This document shows, piece by piece, positions 28,713-37,066 of a stretch of 64,000 nucleotides of DNA. The DNA lies in the NCBI GenBank assembly GCA_965240325.2, contig OZ251231.1, positions 2,170,001-2,234,000 on the forward strand, read 5' to 3'. How positions within the stretch are numbered: the stretch's first letter is position 1; each line of letters begins with the position of its first letter. The notes beneath the pieces are model-generated. The model worked only from the letters and a program-made list of their open reading frames with translations, searched no databases and was not told where the DNA came from. The stretch is from Rebecca billardiae RCC1528 (taxonomy: Eukaryota; Protista; Haptophyta). The translations under genes were made by a program, and so were the position numbers.

Positions 28713-29045
28713 CACTAATCAGGCATCTGGGTCAACCAGGTCCCCTGACTGAGTCAGCTGCGCTGCCCATCTCAAATGGGCCTCAACGGCGCCGCTGACG
28801 TGGCTGTCAGCCAATCAACCATATCACTTATCCAACTGCTGATGATCAGCATATGGAATAGAGATGAGCAGACCCTATGCCTTGCCTGCCGCCTTAAGCG
28901 GAGGCTTGCATGGGATTAGAGGGATGAGGCATTGCCAGGAACGGACGGCCCCTCCGCCCGCATTCATCCTGCCGACCGGCGCTGCGCTGTCGGCAGCAGC
29001 CGCGCCGGCCGGGTGTGAGTGCGGGCGTGTGGCCGCCCTAGCCCC
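28713..29045. repeat. Split direct repeat A1
   Basis: Matches 32447-32779 with no difference seen by eye. Confidence 0.95.
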
Positions 29046-29351
29046 TCCCCTGTCGCCCGCCCTCGGGCGGGCGACCTCGGTGCCGCAGCCCTCAACAGGC
29101 CCAGCACCGCTGCCAGCAGCCCTGCGGACGGCCGCCGACAGGAGGGAGCTGAGCTCACGTCCTGCCGGATCCTATCCGCTGACGGCGTGCCCGGCCAGGC
29201 CGGGCACGCCGCGGGCCGCCAGCCCTGCCCTGCCCTGACACCTGCCCGCCTGGCGTTGATGCCGGCTGCCAGGTGACAGGGCGAGGGCCTGCAGCACGCT
29301 GCAGCGTCCCCGACACCAGCGTGGCTGGACCATGTACTTGCCCATAGTCGA

Positions 29352-31090
29352 CCAGACCTCACAGCGCAAAGCAGCTGCCAAGGCCCAGAACGAGTGCACA
29401 ATGTGGGCCGAGTCGCGCACACCAGAGTAGCCAGTGAGCAGACCTGCCAAGGCACTCGTGTTGACAAGCCTGTGCTTTCGGAAGCCGAAGACCAGGGGGC
29501 GCAGGGCCCCCAGCATGACGGCCATGAATAGGAGAGAGGCCATAGATTGGCGAGAGTCCATCACTGCCCCCGACTAGTGCTGGAAGTGATCCTTCCCAGA
29601 GAGAGCCCTGCTGAACAGAGGCTGCAGGGCGGCCCTGCAGAAGCGGTAAGAAGCCCACTGCAGCTTGCCCAGAAGGCTGCCCATGTCCGACTGTTTGGCA
29701 ATGCAACCTGCTGCAAGGATGGATTCGATGGTATCCACCAGCAAAGAGATCCTGTCAGCATGCACGCTGCACCTGAGCTCGCCGCTGCGAGCAAAAGCAG
29801 AGAAGTCGTGTATGACCCTTAGGAAGGTTTTCACCAGACTTGGCCTGGTTGAACTGGAAGCCCATAAGGAGGCCCAGGTCCACCAGCAGCCCCTGCCCTC
29901 CTTTCGCAAAGGTGGGCTCACACACAGCAAAGTCCTACTCAAAGTAGTGCCCCACACAGATGGGAAGCGCCAGCACTGCGACCCTGGTGACGAACTCAGC
30001 CAGGCGATTGAATTGGATGACCGCGCTCTTCAGGCCAGAGTTGACCCCTGGAGGCGAAAGAACACCACACGTCAGCGGAATGGGTCCCAGTGCGCGAGCA
30101 ACGTGAATCGTGGCTGAGAGCACTGGATCAGGCGATACCCTGCTTCCATGTCATCGATGCCCAGCATCATAGACCATCCAGAGTGGCCCAGCTGTCCCAG
30201 CACGTCGCTGAACAGGGCAGCCGCCCCTGCCGGGAAATCGCCCAAGGTGCACCGAAGCCGTTCGTGCAACGTTGTACACGAGTTGTGCAAGGAGGCCTTG
30301 GCGTTGTCACATGGGCTGACCCTGCCGCCTTGTGGCACCCCGCGGCGGATTATGGGCACGCCACTTGTGCCTGCCGAAGAGGCGATCGACGTCTGGCGAC
30401 GAGCCGATCTCCGCCGCCCATCAGTCCTGCACCTCCTGCTGGGCGTGGGCCCACAGTGCTTCAAGGACGTCTGCGTGAGCGGCGCCGGCAGCCTGGGATT
30501 GGAGTTGCTCCTCCACCGCCGCATCCCACCCGGCGTGATCCAGGTCCGCCATGCGGAGGCAGGCGTGCTGCGCATCTGCTCGGAAGACTCCGCTGTCCGC
30601 GCAATTGCCCACGCACTGGACACCGCAGAAGAAATGAAAGCCACATGGGGCTTGCCGACGGTCTTACCATTCCGCGTTCCGAAGACCCGCTCGGGTCGGC
30701 GGATGGAACCCGGTCCGAGCTGACGCAGTTCAGCCGACCAGCCAGACAGGCTGTCCGCCACCTCTCACGGTGTGGAACCAAGCCAGTCGGGCGTCGTGGA
30801 CCGAGGTGCCTCTTGGTGCACAGATCCACGAGGCCGCCGCGCGCATGTCGAGTGCCAGGCCGAGCACAGGCGCGTTGAAGGGGTGCTCCATCTGGCACGC
30901 GGCCTCGATCCTGGGAGTGCCACTGCTGCTGCTTGAGCGTCGGCCGCTGGTATGCGGTGGCCACCACCAGGCCTGGGATGACCGACGTCGCCGCCTGGTG
31001 GACGGGCGGCCGGCGCATAACGTCGCGTTGCGCGCGCACCGCCTCCCGGCGCTGTGCGTCCGCTGCGACGCCGAACTCACCGGCCGCCAT
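29352..31090 (-). pseudogene. Frameshifted DIRS-type reverse transcriptase plus a truncated RNase H
   Basis: Fragments across frames: EHPF, KPHVAF, LWAHAQQEV, QGGRVSPCDNAKASLHN, DDMEAGYRLI, GLKSAVIQFNR, GHYFE*DF (broken YxDD at about 29929-29950), SLLGKLQWA, and RNase H C-half NTSALAGLLTGYS...FWALAAAL..EVW (29352-29465). Confidence 0.85.
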
Positions 31091-31208
31091 GCCGCATGTG
31101 CGGACGGCCGATCCGGGACCGAAAGACCCCGGGTGTCCGGGGTGCGCAGGGTCACCGTGCGGCCGGGGCCGCGGGCGGGAAATCAGCCGCCGCGCAACGA
31201 GCGCCCCG

Positions 31209-32177
31209 ATGGCAGCCGTCCCCAACCCCGCCGACGCGCCGCTGGCGCCCGACGAATTGGCGGCCGCAGTGGCGCGCGCTCGCGCGAACGCGGTGGTGGC
31301 GGTGAAACTCGCCTTGGACGCCACCGGCGCCGAGCCGGCGCCGGGTGCGTCGCGCACGCGCGGCCCGCCGCGCTGCTGCCGTCAGGGGCTGCGGGCACGC
31401 GGCCTGCCGCCTGCTGCAGCTGCTCGGGGTCGCCGGCGCCGAGAGCGACCGCGGCCTGACGAACCAGGTGATCGAGACGCTGAGGACGGCGCCCGCCCCG
31501 GGCGACGGCCCGTGGGCGGACGCCTTCGAGAGCGCGACGCTGGCCGCCCGCAACGGCCAAGTCGAAGTGACGATCAGCCGATCGGTCGGCGGAGCAGCGG
31601 GAGATGTCAACGATCACCGCCGCCGCCATGCCGACGTTGGCGCCCGCAACACTGCCGCCGCCGCGTGACGAGGCGCCTCGGCTCCGGCGGGAGCCATCGC
31701 GGCCCACGAAGGACGAGAAGCCCCAGCAGCTGCTGACCAAAGGCTGCGTGTGGCAGGAGGCCCACCTTGTCAACGACCAGACCGTCTCGATCGTCCTGCT
31801 GCCCGGGCCGCTCAACGCCTCGAAGAAGCTCCCCGGGCACTCGGAGAGATCTCCGGCGGCCAAGTGCCGCCGTTCCCGCAGTTCTCGGACGTCCTCGCCG
31901 CCGGGGCATCCGTGCCATCGCCGGAGGGGCGTGAGCAGTGCGCGTGCCCTGCTCCCTGAGCACATGGTGCTGGACGAGGTGAACGACACGGCCCTCGTGC
32001 CAGCGCTCCGAGACGACCAGTCACGGGCGTGTGCCACTCGTTCCAGCGGAGCGGCAGCTGCCCCAAGGTGGGGTGCCGCTTCCTCCATGTGCAGCAGAAG
32101 CAAAGCCGAAGGCTGGCGACGGCCGCGGGAAGCGCAAGGCAGGGTCAGACTCAGGTGGGGATCACACGTCCAATGAT
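31209..32177 (+). pseudogene. Frameshifted gag-like ORF ending in a CCCH zinc finger
   Basis: Coding-like segments from ATG 31209 across several frames, ending in CHSFQRSGSCPKVGCRFLH (32032-32088). CCCH fingers are known from ORF1 of some YR retroelements. Confidence 0.6.
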
Positions 32178-32232
32178 GAGTAGACGATATGACTGCACTG
32201 CAGCTTCCTTGTGTAGGGTGGGTTGGGTGGGA

Positions 32233-32448
32233 CGCGATGCAGCTGCGACTCGGAGCCGCCTGCTGATGCGCTTTCCCTTGCGGCGGCGAGTGCCGCCTCA
32301 CCCGGAAGAACATCCGGTCCACTGTGAGTCTGTGCACTGCCGGACCGCGCACGGTCCGGGCACGATGCATGGTGTGCTGTGACCTCTGGTTGTTTGAGCC
32401 ATCTTCTGATTAGTAAGCTGCCACCAGCCTTCGGTGTTTATCGCACCA
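32233..32448. repeat. Split direct repeat B1, abutting A2 (internal copy of the circle junction)
   Basis: Matches 36851-37066 and contains the hairpin CCGGACCG-CGCA-CGGTCCGG. Confidence 0.95.
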
Positions 32449-32779
32449 CTAATCAGGCATCTGGGTCAACCAGGTCCCCTGACTGAGTCAGCTGCGCTGC
32501 CCATCTCAAATGGGCCTCAACGGCGCCGCTGACGTGGCTGTCAGCCAATCAACCATATCACTTATCCAACTGCTGATGATCAGCATATGGAATAGAGATG
32601 AGCAGACCCTATGCCTTGCCTGCCGCCTTAAGCGGAGGCTTGCATGGGATTAGAGGGATGAGGCATTGCCAGGAACGGACGGCCCCTCCGCCCGCATTCA
32701 TCCTGCCGACCGGCGCTGCGCTGTCGGCAGCAGCCGCGCCGGCCGGGTGTGAGTGCGGGCGTGTGGCCGCCCTAGCCCC
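32447..32779. repeat. Split direct repeat A2
   Basis: Matches 28713-29045. Confidence 0.95.
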
Positions 32780-33169
32780 ATTGATTGCCCTCCTGGCCAC
32801 TGCGGTTGCCCGCACCCGGCGTCATCCCTTCCCATCGCTGCCTCAGATGGCGCACAGGGAGACTGCAGAGGTCTGCTCGGCCACTTCTGGCCTGCTCGCT
32901 GCATAGTATGTATGATGCAGCACAGTGCCGCATGCATCAGTGGAGCATGCGCACCTGATGGCCATCACCGGCCAGATAGCACCATCAGGTGCTATCTGCG
33001 CTGCCAGTGCCACTGCTGGCACTGGCTGCGGCAGCGGGGGCAGTCCCTTGTTCGAGTAGTCCTGCCTCCCCGCTGGCGAGTCGGTCCATTGACCGCCGGT
33101 GTGCTCAATGGCATGCCCCACCGCTAGTGCGCACGAGTCAGTCCAGCGCACGCGAACTGCTCGAGCCTT

Positions 33170-36100
33170 GATGCAGGCACCCCTCACCGACTCACGAAGA
33201 GCCGAGTGAGGTAGGCCCGAGCACCAGCTGGCCATCGAGCCACGAGGGCTGAAACCTATCTCCATGAGGAGATAACTGCCCAGAGGGCGCACACGCCCAC
33301 TAGGACCGGACCCGCGCCCGCTGCAGCCCAGCTTCAGTATGCAGCGTGAGCCAGTCCTGGTTGCAGGCTGCACTCGGCCAGCCTCACCGACTCCTGGAGG
33401 GCCTACTGAGGGAGGCCAGAGCACCAGCTGGCCATCGAGCCATGAGGGCTGGGCCCTGTCTCCATGAGACAACGCAGCTGCCACGAGGGCACACTCATCG
33501 GCCCAGACCGTAAGCTGCAGCCACCGCTGCATGCTGCAGTGATGCTGCGCGAGCTTTTCAGCTGCAAGTCGCAGGCATGCAACCCTCACAGACGCACGAA
33601 GGGTCGAATGAGGTAAAGGCTGCAGGCAACCCTCACCGACGACTCACGAAGAGCCGACTGAGGGAGGCCCGAGCACCAGCAGCGGGCCATCAAGCCAAGA
33701 TGACTGGACCCTGTCTCCATGAGACATGATGGCCGGTGGCCACCAGGGCGCACACGCCCAGACCGTCCGCGCGCCGAACAGCACCGCGCAATGTGCTGCG
33801 TGTCAGCGTGAGCTTCCAGGGGTTGCAGGCGGTTGCAGGCAACGCCCTCACCGACTCACGAAGAGCCCGGGACTGAGGTAGGCCCAAGCATCTGCGGGCC
33901 ATCGAGCCACGCGGGCTGGACCCTGTCCAGTTCATAGCAGTTACTTGTCATCATAATGAGACAACTGCGGCGGCCACGAGGGCACACACATACAGACCGT
34001 CTGCGCCTCAGCACCGCCTTGCGCGTTGTGCTGCGTGAGCTTCCAGGTTGCAGGCGGTTGCAGGCAACCCTCACCGACTTACGAAGAGCCCGGGACTGAG
34101 GTAGGCCCGAGCATCAGCGGGCCATCGAGCCACACGGGCCTGCCGGGACCGCCCGCGTGTCTCAGCATGAGACTGAACGGCGCCGGCGGCCACCAGGGCA
34201 CACACGCCCAGACCGTCCGCCGCGCCTCAGCACCGCAATGTAATGCTGCGTGAGCTTCCAGGTTGCAGGCGGTCGCAGGCAACCCTCACCGACTCACGAA
34301 GAGCCCGGGACTGAGGCAGGCCAGAGCACCAGCTGGCCATCGAGCCACGAGGGCTGGACCCTGTCTCCATGAGACAACGGCTGCGGCCACAAGGGCATAC
34401 ACACCCAAACCGGCCGCTGCAGCACAGCTGTACGCTGCGTGAGCTTCCCGGTTGCAGGTGCAGGCAACCCTCACCGACTCCCGAAGGACCGACTGAGGTA
34501 GGCCAGAGCACCAGCGGGCCATCGAGCCACGAGGGCTGGACCCTGTCTCCATGAGACGACGGCGGCGGCCACGAGGGCGCACACGCCCAGACCGTCCGCT
34601 GCAGCACCGCGATATGCGGCGTGAGCTTCCCGGTTGCAGGTTGCAGGCAACCCTCACCGACTCACGAAGAGCCGACTGAGGCAGGCCAGAGCACCAGCGG
34701 GCCATCGAGCCACGAGGGCTGGACCCTGTCTCCATGAGACAACGGCGGCGGCCACAAGGGCATACACACCCAAACCGGCCGCTGCAGCACAGCTGTACGC
34801 TGCGTGAGCTTCCCGGTTGCAGGTTGCAGGCAACCCTCACCGACTCACGAAGAGCCGACTGAGGCAGGCCAGAGCACCAGCGGGCCATCGAGCCACGAGG
34901 GCTGGACCCTGTCTCCATGAGACGACGGCGGCGGCCACGAGGGCGCACACGCCCAGACCGTCCGCTGCAGCACCGCGATATGCGGCGTGAGCTTCCCGGT
35001 TGCAGGTTGCAGGCAACCCTCACCGACTCACGAAGAGCCGACTGAGGCAGGCCAGAGCACCAGCGGGCCATCGAGCCACGAGGGCTGGACCCTGTCTCCA
35101 TGAGACAACGGCGGCGGCCACAAGGGCGCACACGCCCAAACCGTCCGCTGCAGCACCGCGATATGCGGCGTGAGCTTCCCGGTTGCAGGTTGCAGGCAAC
35201 CCTCACCGACTCACGAAGAGCCGACTGAGGTAGGCCAGAGCACCAGCGAGCCATCGAGCCACGAGGGCTGGACCCTGTCTCCATGAGACAACGGTGGCGG
35301 CCACAAGGGCACACACACCCAAACCGGCCGCTGCAGCACCGCGATATGCGGCGTGAGCTTCCCGGTTGCAGGTGCAGGCAACCCTCACCGACTCCCGAAG
35401 GACCGACTGAGGCAGGCCAGAGCACCAGCGGGCCATCGAGCCACGAGGGCTGGACCCTGTCTCCATGAGACAACGGCTGCGGCCACAAGGGCGCACACGC
35501 CCAGACCGTCCGCTGCAGCACCGCGATATGCGGCGTGAGCTTCCCGGTTGCAGGTTGCAGGCAACCCTCACCGACTCACGAAGAGCCGACTGAGGCAGGC
35601 CAGAGCACCAGCGGGCCATCGAGCCACGAGGGCTGGACCCTGTCTCCATGAGACAACGGCGGCGGCCACAAGGGCGCACACGCCCAGACCGTCCGCTGCA
35701 GCACCGCGATATGCGGCGTGAGCTTCCCGGTTGCAGGTTACAGGCAACCCTCACCGACTCACGAAGAGCCGACTGAGGTAGGCCAGAGCACCAGCGAGCC
35801 ATCGAGCCACGAGGGCTGGACCCTGTCTCCATGAGACGACGGCGGCGGCCACGAGGGCGCACACGCCCAGACCGTCCGCTGCAGCACCGCGATATGCGGC
35901 GTGAGCTTCCCGGTTGCAGGTTACAGGCAACCCTCACCGACTCACGAAGAGCCGACTGAGGTAGGCCAGAGCACCAGCGAGCCATCGAGCCACGAGGGCT
36001 GGACCCTGTCTCCATGAGACGACGGCGGCGGCCACGAGGGCGCACACGCCCAGACCGTCCGCTGCAGCACCGCGATATGCGGCGTGAGCTTCCCGGTTGC

Positions 36101-36750
36101 AGGTTGCAGGCAACCCTCACCGACTCACGAAGAGCCGACTGAGGCAGGCCAGAGCACCAGCGGGCCATCGAGCCACGAGGGCTGGACCCTGTCTCCATGA
36201 GACGACGGCGGCGGCCACAAGGGCGCACACGCCCAGACCGTCCGCTGCAGCACCGCGATATGCGGCGTGAGCTTCCCGGTTGCAGGTTGCAGGCAACCCT
36301 CACCGACTCACGAAGAGCCGACTGAGGCAGGCCAGAGCACCAGCGGGCCATCGAGCCACGAGGGCTGGACCCTGTCTCCATGAGACAACGGCGGCGGCCA
36401 CAAGGGCGCACACGCCCAAACCGTCCGCTGCAGCACCGCGATATGCGGCGTGAGCTTCCCGGTTGCAGGTTGCAGGCAACCCTCACAGACTCCCGAAGGG
36501 CCGACTGAGGTAGGCCAGAGCGCCAGCGGGCCATCGAGCCACGAGGGCTGGACCCTGTCTCCATGAGACACCGACGGCGGCCCCGAGGGCACGCTCGCCC
36601 CGACCGTCTGCGGCAGCGCCGCGGAATGCAACGAGCGCTTCTCGGTTGCAGGGCTGCAGGTTGTTGGCAACCCTCGCCGACCCGTGAAGAGCCGGCGGTC
36701 GGGGGAGGCCCTATCCCCGCGGGCCATCGCGCCACGAGGACTGGGCCATG
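33170..36750. repeat. Tandem array of a 183-bp unit (about 13 homogeneous and 6 degenerate copies)
   Basis: The CCCTCAC anchor recurs at 34283, 34468, 34651, 34834, 35017, 35200, 35382, 35565, 35748, 35931, 36114, 36297 and 36480, with diverged copies at about 33181-34067 and 36671. Confidence 0.97.
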
Positions 36751-36850
36751 TCGCTGTGCGAGCCCAGCTGCGGCCCCAAGGGCACGCTCGCCGAGGCCGT
36801 CGCCGCGCCCCCGGGGGGCAACGTAACGCGATGCAGCTGCGACTCGGAGC

Positions 36851-37066
36851 CGCGATGCAGCTGCGACTCGGAGCCGCCTGCTGATGCGCTTTCCCTTGCG
36901 GCGGCGAGTGCCGCCTCACCCGGAAGAACATCCGGTCCACTGTGAGTCTGTGCACTGCCGGACCGCGCACGGTCCGGGCACGATGCATGGTGTGCTGTGA
37001 CCTCTGGTTGTTTGAGCCATCTTCTGATTAGTAAGCTGCCACCAGCCTTCGGTGTTTATCGCACCA
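36851..37066. repeat. Split direct repeat B2 (right terminus), preceded by a 24-bp duplication of its first bases
   Basis: Matches 32233-32448; CGCGATGCAGCTGCGACTCGGAGC occurs twice at 36827-36874. Confidence 0.95.

Follow-up and report, generated by a model that had tools for sequence, protein, structure and literature searches.

A split-repeat retroelement family of the haptophyte Rebecca billardiae that multiplied after the death of its own genes

We analysed a retroelement at positions 28713 to 37066 of a 64,000-nucleotide window, contig C14:2170001-2234000 of the Rebecca billardiae RCC1528 assembly (72 Mb, 41 contigs); positions given below without a contig name are those of this window. 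The element belongs to a family that multiplied after its own genes had died, and did so very recently. The explanation that we favour, and think quite probable, is that it is a non-autonomous split-repeat element of the DIRS order that moved very recently with enzymes supplied in trans and that, in this strain, probably no longer has a helper. As such it derives, as a non-autonomous form, from a variant layout of an already known kind of element. It offers a clean case of a retroelement family multiplying after gene death, with the same lesions in nine copies and two subfamilies and with some copies identical.

Split direct repeats in the order A1...B1A2...B2 are the defining mark of the PAT, Ngaro and VIPER groups (PMC4157794, PMC8547959, PMC6681497), and the original prediction had recognised this layout in the window from repeats that appeared identical. 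Direct pairwise comparison bears this out: neither the 333-bp A pair nor the 216-bp B pair contains a mismatch, identity in both pairs ends precisely at the repeat borders, and the dinucleotide CA (32447-32448), common to B1 and A2, forms a 2-bp shared internal junction. The orientation was read wrongly at first, from left to right. The remnant of the reverse transcriptase (RT) and RNase H genes is carried by the minus strand of the window, which is therefore the sense strand of the element and runs opposite to that layout. Read in this direction, the element consists of B' (216 bp), the tandem array, the A'B' junction, about 1.2 kb, the RT/RNase H pseudogene and A' (333 bp). The repeats and the array, in the order of the sense strand, are the following.

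36851-37066, minus strand: B2, the terminal repeat at the 5' end of the sense strand, 216 bp; on the plus strand the element ends here in ...CGCACCA
36827-36877, unstranded: tandem 24-bp duplication that copies the start of B and lies at the inner edge of B2; shorter variants occur in other copies
34184-36660, unstranded: tandem array between A2 and B2, period 183 bp, 13.5 units, 93% identity
33165-34183, unstranded: degenerate older array units, 62-90% identical to the young units
32447-32779, minus strand: A2, the internal A copy, 333 bp, identical to A1
32233-32448, minus strand: B1, the internal B copy, which forms the CA junction with A2
28713-29045, minus strand: A1, the terminal repeat at the 3' end of the sense strand, 333 bp; its plus-strand start is CACTAATCAGG

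The family comprises nine full A...BA...B copies on seven contigs: the window copy on C14, three copies on C31 (C31a, C31b and C31c), and one each on C26, C1, C16, C3 and C36. The genome search for A and B that had been proposed as a check returned these nine full-length loci and a few small forms described below. The split-repeat layout is the same in every copy, all nine begin CACTAATCAGG (C36 without the first C), and eight end CGCACCA, the other being C31c, where B2 stops 9 bases short. The sequences flanking the copies are unrelated, and neither the nine full insertions nor three of the small ones carry a target-site duplication. Shared termini within unrelated flanks indicate insertions rather than segmental duplications, and the prospect that A and B occur only in this window as a local duplication, which was to count against the original prediction, is removed by the nine dispersed loci. 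In seven of the nine copies the two A repeats of an element, and likewise its two B repeats, are 0-1 base apart; the A pair differs by a 3-bp indel in C31c and a 7-bp indel in C36, and the inner duplicated edge of B2 shows short variations among copies. Between copies, A differs by at most 5 bases. Near-identical pairs within elements are the pattern expected of repeats that are regenerated in each round of copying.

What remains of the coding capacity is listed next.

29349-31011, minus strand: RT/RNase H pseudogene, with pieces of the lineage profile in alternating frames
29929-29946, minus strand: destroyed catalytic motif YFE*DF (family consensus YFDD), in the context CVGHYFE*DFAVCEP, 29958 to 29905
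31960-32232, plus strand: open reading frame (ORF) fragment on the strand opposite to the RT; a C-x8-C-x4-C-x3-H motif occupies 32032-32088
33053-33160, minus strand: putative C-terminal tail of a recombinase ORF, a weak remnant matching profile positions 531-562 of 571 at 13.7 bits

The pieces in the pseudogene match positions 38-117, 171-355, 366-402, 404-437, 438-524 and 650-687 of the RT/RNase H profile of this lineage; positions from about 525 to 650, the N-terminal half of RNase H, are missing, as is anything past 687. The frameshifts, the broken catalytic motif and the truncated RNase H that had been read from the window sequence are thus all correct, but on the opposite strand. These lesions are not peculiar to the window copy. 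The pattern of profile pieces and frames, the stops, YFE*DF and the loss of the RNase H N-terminal half are common to all nine copies in both subfamilies, the open frames of the two longest RT pieces do not vary in length among the full copies, and C36 departs from the shared pattern solely by a missing 3' part. Substitutions between the subfamilies number 6, 7 and 9 at the three codon positions of the RT remnant and 2, 7 and 2 at those of the RNase H remnant, an even spread that marks them as neutral. Because the same lesions are found in all copies, the family must have multiplied while it was already non-autonomous: it has no functional ORFs and is nevertheless present in multiple copies with regenerated repeats, as is TOC1.

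How recent this was can be gauged from the segment between A1 and A2. Over this segment subfamily 1 (the window copy, C31a, C31b, C31c, C26 and C36) diverges by 0-0.54% and subfamily 2 (C1, C16 and C3) by 0.2-1.3%, with about 2% between the two outside a segment, 31113-31900, that has been replaced and is not alignable between them. C26 differs from C36 by 0.00% and from C31b by 0.05%, and the array intervals of C26, C36 and C31b, taken as a set, measure 2907, 3458 and 3487 bp. Repeats no more than 4-5 kb apart can homogenise, so it might be argued that the insertions are old and that gene conversion has kept A1 like A2, B1 like B2 and whole copies like one another; C31c is, indeed, old enough to carry a nested insertion of 1.84 kb. 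Against this, 4-kb segments on different contigs are 0.00-0.05% apart while their array lengths and flanks differ, and transposition is a far likelier explanation than a conversion between unlinked loci that covered the full length of the copies and halted precisely at their termini. We therefore regard homogenisation of old insertions as highly improbable.

Several observations concern individual copies. The nested insertion (C31:896274-898113, in C31c, locus L009) is 1840 bp long, unrelated to the family, lies 42 bp from B1 and is accompanied by a 5-bp duplication, ATGAC. This C31 copy, with an interval of 5038 bp, was considered as a candidate autonomous element on account of its greater length and rejected, the extra 1840 bp being the insertion. 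In subfamily 2 (L004, L005 and L006, which are C1, C16 and C3) the RT interval contains the first 40 bp of B together with some 690 bp derived from the 183-bp array; this insert lies about 480-1150 bp into the RT interval, next to B1, and replaces the equivalent of window positions 31113-31900.

The array itself is a private feature of the family. In a genome search the 183-bp repeat was confined to the nine copies, and its length varies even between near-identical ones. An independent satellite was considered and rejected, as the repeat is present only within these copies. The minus strand of the array is an open frame, and a protein-coding repeat was rejected as well, since changes in the array show no third-codon-position bias.

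The assignment of the pseudogene to an RT rests on comparison with intact proteins. A 230-amino-acid piece (30764-30075) matches 131 proteins in a library of 1.84 billion, with a best E value of 3e-24; all are unnamed and metagenomic, and many are about 770-800 amino acids long. In an alignment of 27 of them the usual RT blocks can be recognised, YFDD is invariant and RNase H blocks ending in ADLPSR are present, and tblastn with an intact relative finds the element at an E value of 1e-29. The element thus carries, as a pseudogene, the RT with RNase H of a retroelement. Pfam searches with ten ORF pieces of the element gave no RT, RNase H, recombinase or integrase match, and genome-wide searches with RVT_1 and Phage_integrase gave nothing inside it. 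In one metagenomic relative there is a weak RVT_1 match just after the part matched by the 230-amino-acid piece.

No tyrosine recombinase had been visible in the element, and both Pfam and a lineage-specific recombinase profile agree, the latter adding only the weak tail match listed above. That match lies on the sense strand, downstream of the array, at the expected place and in all nine copies, and the open frame of the array continues into it. We take 33160-33053 to be a 32-residue tail of a lost recombinase gene, giving this reading low weight. The plus-strand ORF fragments stand head to head with the RT, their reading split into at least three pieces, and the CCCH motif was sought in the antisense ORF of the metagenomic relatives and not found there. 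With tblastn, this genome's own recombinase and RT ORFs gave nothing significant against the element, and the 459- and 755-amino-acid ORFs of the metagenomic relatives gave no match to it. It is because the element has no recombinase while the intact relatives of its RT have one that we classify it as a non-autonomous derivative.

Those intact relatives are found in metagenomes only, marine and other. In L023-L026, a 362-bp unit recurs between an ORF of 699-755 amino acids and a module that consists of a 459-amino-acid ORF on the opposite strand and a 777-amino-acid RT/RNase H ORF, and the outer ends carry partial copies of the same unit. This layout is a split-repeat design in which each of the two intervals holds genes. 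The 699-amino-acid ORF has no Pfam match, a PDB sequence search with the 459-amino-acid antisense ORF returned nothing, and the 755-amino-acid ORF found nothing among the recombinase ORFs of this genome. The C-terminal 400 residues of the 699-amino-acid ORF were folded together with 23 homologues (predicted local distance difference test score, pLDDT, 75.7), and in a Foldseek search with the predicted fold the top 47 matches, and nearly all of the top 50, were tyrosine recombinases, including Cre, XerH, lambda Int, IntI, Flp, XerA and Tn1549 Int. A second structural aligner matched Cre with a Z score of 11.1 over 261 residues at a root-mean-square deviation of 10.3, the two domains being arranged differently relative to each other; for the catalytic domain by itself the Z scores were 7-7.5 at deviations of 3.8-4.1. 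These 400 residues are thus predicted to adopt a tyrosine recombinase fold. The Cre-like ORF inside the split repeats of the relatives makes the RT lineage one of tyrosine-recombinase retroelements, and the recombinase interval of the relatives corresponds to the array interval of the element studied here.

Some further features of the relatives were noted in passing. Telomere-like TTAGGG/GTAGGG repeats occupy a contig end (L023:1-110), about 800 bp from the relative. DUF4326 lies C-terminal to the RT/RNase H in some relatives (entries P0017 and P0048), and one other relative has a SET domain and one a bicarbonate-transporter piece, which are probably gene-model fusions.

The shared two-interval design also bears on the possibility that the element is a head-to-tail pair of separate elements, A-RT-B and A-array-B, or that it moved purely as DNA through the action of a recombinase. 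Two A..B units in succession are formally a dimer, and small A.B forms do occur at three or four loci. Yet the genome holds no RT-only or array-only monomer, the intact metagenomic relatives have genes in both intervals, and the lineage encodes an RT. There is, in our view, little chance that either version is right.

If the element was mobilised in trans, as we favour, the enzymes must have come from elsewhere, and the original prediction placed their source in an autonomous partner in this alga that still copies the family. Recombinases are usually specific for their own junction, so a cognate partner with the same A and B ends would be the natural expectation, and near-identical copies at different loci with identical repeat pairs would follow from its activity. 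An intact RT-RNase H-recombinase helper with these ends was sought in the assembly by three routes and not found. Apart from a few old fragments and the small A.B forms, a genome search places A and B in the nine dead copies alone; the RT/RNase H profile finds no intact RT of this lineage in the 72 Mb, only the dead copies, a second dead family and weaker, unrelated RTs; and the recombinase profile finds no intact recombinase of this lineage in the 41 contigs. Pieces of the RT/RNase H profile score up to 124 bits on the dead copies and an intact copy would far outscore this, which makes the absence a genuine finding, as far as the assembly reaches. We consider a cognate partner present in this alga and still active to be improbable. 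Of what was originally proposed, the non-autonomous state and recent copying in trans are supported by the shared lesions and by copies 0.00-0.05% apart, and it is the resident partner that has to be given up for this assembly. The helper may be absent, polymorphic in the population or unassembled.

The second dead family of the same RT lineage comprises L028-L030 (L028:4562-9063; C18:1935000-1944999, C3:3419500-3429499 and C31:880000-889999). Here, with the RT core deleted, the N-terminal domain joins the RNase H part directly; direct repeats of about 170-210 bp flank this unit, and a tandem array with a period of about 230-465 bp follows it. One copy lies 6 kb from C31c.

Other split-repeat families are present in this genome. 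L021:750-4711 (C16:600000-607999) and L022:850-7519 (C1:3344000-3351999) have the layout A1-ORFs-B1A2-B2, with open RVT_1 ORFs of 575-585 amino acids, about 7-8 copies each, and junctions that share 3-4 bases. L016:3145-8799, L017:921-7445 and L018:2089-7469 (C33:124000-133999, C18:1300500-1310499 and C23:1217800-1227799) represent another family. It is laid out as A1-ORF-B1A2-short spacer-B2, and its ORF, open over 963-1317 amino acids, has a weak Phage_integrase match at its end and no YxDD motif. Part of this ORF resembles the region after the RT core in the L021 ORF (E value 8e-5), and each copy seen lies within an AT/AC/GT dinucleotide tract.

These families offer another possible source of enzymes, in that the element could have borrowed RT and recombinase from unrelated intact families of the L021, L022 or L016-L018 types. 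The former two have open RVT_1 frames, the last an open recombinase ORF, and all of them likewise share a few bases at their junctions. Their termini and junctions, though, are unrelated to those of the element, their proteins have no significant similarity to its remnants, and their RTs match the lineage profile at just about 34 bits. Such cross-mobilisation is possible but unlikely, and less likely than the stranding of the family without a helper of its own. A broader variant, to which we likewise attach only a small probability, is that the RT and recombinase represent an undescribed, Pfam-invisible clade of marine metagenomes and this alga, with a recombinase interval, an internal repeat junction and an antisense ORF head to head with the RT/RNase H, and that its dead families in this alga (the one studied here and L028-L030) continue to move by means of enzymes of unrelated split-repeat elements.

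The proposed mobilisation in trans can be set out in steps that follow the accepted model for split-repeat elements. The ancestor would have consisted of a terminal repeat, a recombinase ORF, the internal repeat junction, an antisense ORF with the RT/RNase H ORF, and a second terminal repeat. The recombinase ORF would then have been replaced by the 183-bp array, and the RT/RNase H ORF would have decayed to a pseudogene. In each cycle a minus-strand transcript running from B2 to A1 would be copied by an RT supplied in trans, the internal A'B' junction would template the restoration of joined ends, and a recombinase, also supplied in trans, would insert the joined form through its CA-core junction without target duplication. 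Such a cycle would regenerate identical A and B pairs in every round.

Several points weigh against this account. No helper has been identified, and mobilisation in trans is deduced from shared lesions and near-identical dispersed copies. The element encodes no recombinase itself, and its tail remnant scores only as given above. Pfam is blind to the RT pieces and to most of the intact relatives, so that the RT call depends on alignment motifs, on the one weak RVT_1 match and, for another relative, on an E value of 0.009. The termini of the metagenomic relatives are uncertain, and their contigs may be collapsed or chimeric. Finally, the public reads, low-depth contigs of one sample, contain sequences of the family and its B-to-A junction, but no RNA, no circular or linear complementary DNA of the element and no empty site was observed.

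Among known elements, the nearest algal case is TOC1 of the green alga Chlamydomonas reinhardtii, a non-autonomous element of the DIRS order (PMC9940879, PMC4157794). We compared the two by description only. Like the present element, TOC1, which is non-coding and has split repeats, needs enzymes supplied in trans; unlike it, the present element retains a recognisable RT/RNase H pseudogene and a private 183-bp array, its RT relatives have no methyltransferase-like domain, and no helper is found in the assembly. The analogy drawn originally therefore holds for a multi-copy element with no functional ORFs and fails for the partner with matching ends.

The VIPER/TATE elements of trypanosomatids (PMC6681497) resemble the lineage studied here in having a recombinase ORF upstream of the RT/RNase H, as in the intact relatives of the RT, and in combining split direct repeats with the lack of a methyltransferase-like domain. 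They differ in that the internal repeats of VIPER lie at the 3' end (A1-ORFs-B1A2B2), whereas here the junction stands between the recombinase and RT intervals, and an additional antisense ORF is placed head to head with the RT. Such an ORF does not appear in the cited descriptions of known elements. SIRE, a short derivative of VIPER that corresponds to its A2+B2 region (PMC6681497), resembles the small A.B forms, which are, however, few (3-4 loci) rather than high-copy. In the nematode form of Pat1 and in kangaroo of Volvox (PMC4157794) internal repeats in the middle of the element separate the recombinase from the RT module, as they do here. Both place the RT module first and the recombinase second and have a methyltransferase-like domain, in which the present lineage differs: its intact relatives of 770-800 amino acids end about 60 residues past the RNase H motifs, with no Pfam match there, so that this hallmark of DIRS and PAT elements in the strict sense is wanting. 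Kangaroo has one inverted ORF as well, but there it is the recombinase, whereas here it is a third ORF. The Ngaro elements of Cafeteria burkhardae (PMC8547959) share with this family split direct repeats, the lack of an rve integrase and scattered solo AB units. Long terminal repeat retrotransposons have two complete, identical repeats (TG...CA), a target duplication of 4-6 bp and an rve integrase; the ends of the present element are different halves, A on one side and B on the other, there is no target duplication and no rve integrase match was obtained, so it does not have the features of that group.

For genome annotation this is otherwise an ordinary transposon family. With no enzyme of the lineage in the genome, the identity and specificity of the helper of a non-autonomous tyrosine-recombinase element become directly testable in an alga. 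Standard domain libraries miss this RT and recombinase lineage, and such elements are therefore probably under-annotated.

The small forms consist of A followed directly by B and occur at four loci, one on C10, two on C21 and one, much diverged, on C5. In these, A ends at position 316, 297 or 328, that is, within its last 36 bases, while the first base of B is constant and is preceded by an A. Splicing was rejected as their origin, the borders lacking GT/AG. In Ngaro, A2 abuts B2 and recombination between A1 and A2 yields solo AB units; in the element studied here 4 kb separate A2 from B2, and simple A1-A2 recombination was rejected on this ground. This gap, together with variable A ends and a fixed B start, calls for an origin other than that in Ngaro, and we would guess at template switching during reverse transcription. 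The small element on C10 (L010:671-2003; C10:2203670-2205002) is tandemly duplicated together with 269 bp of its right flank, with a period of 801 bp.

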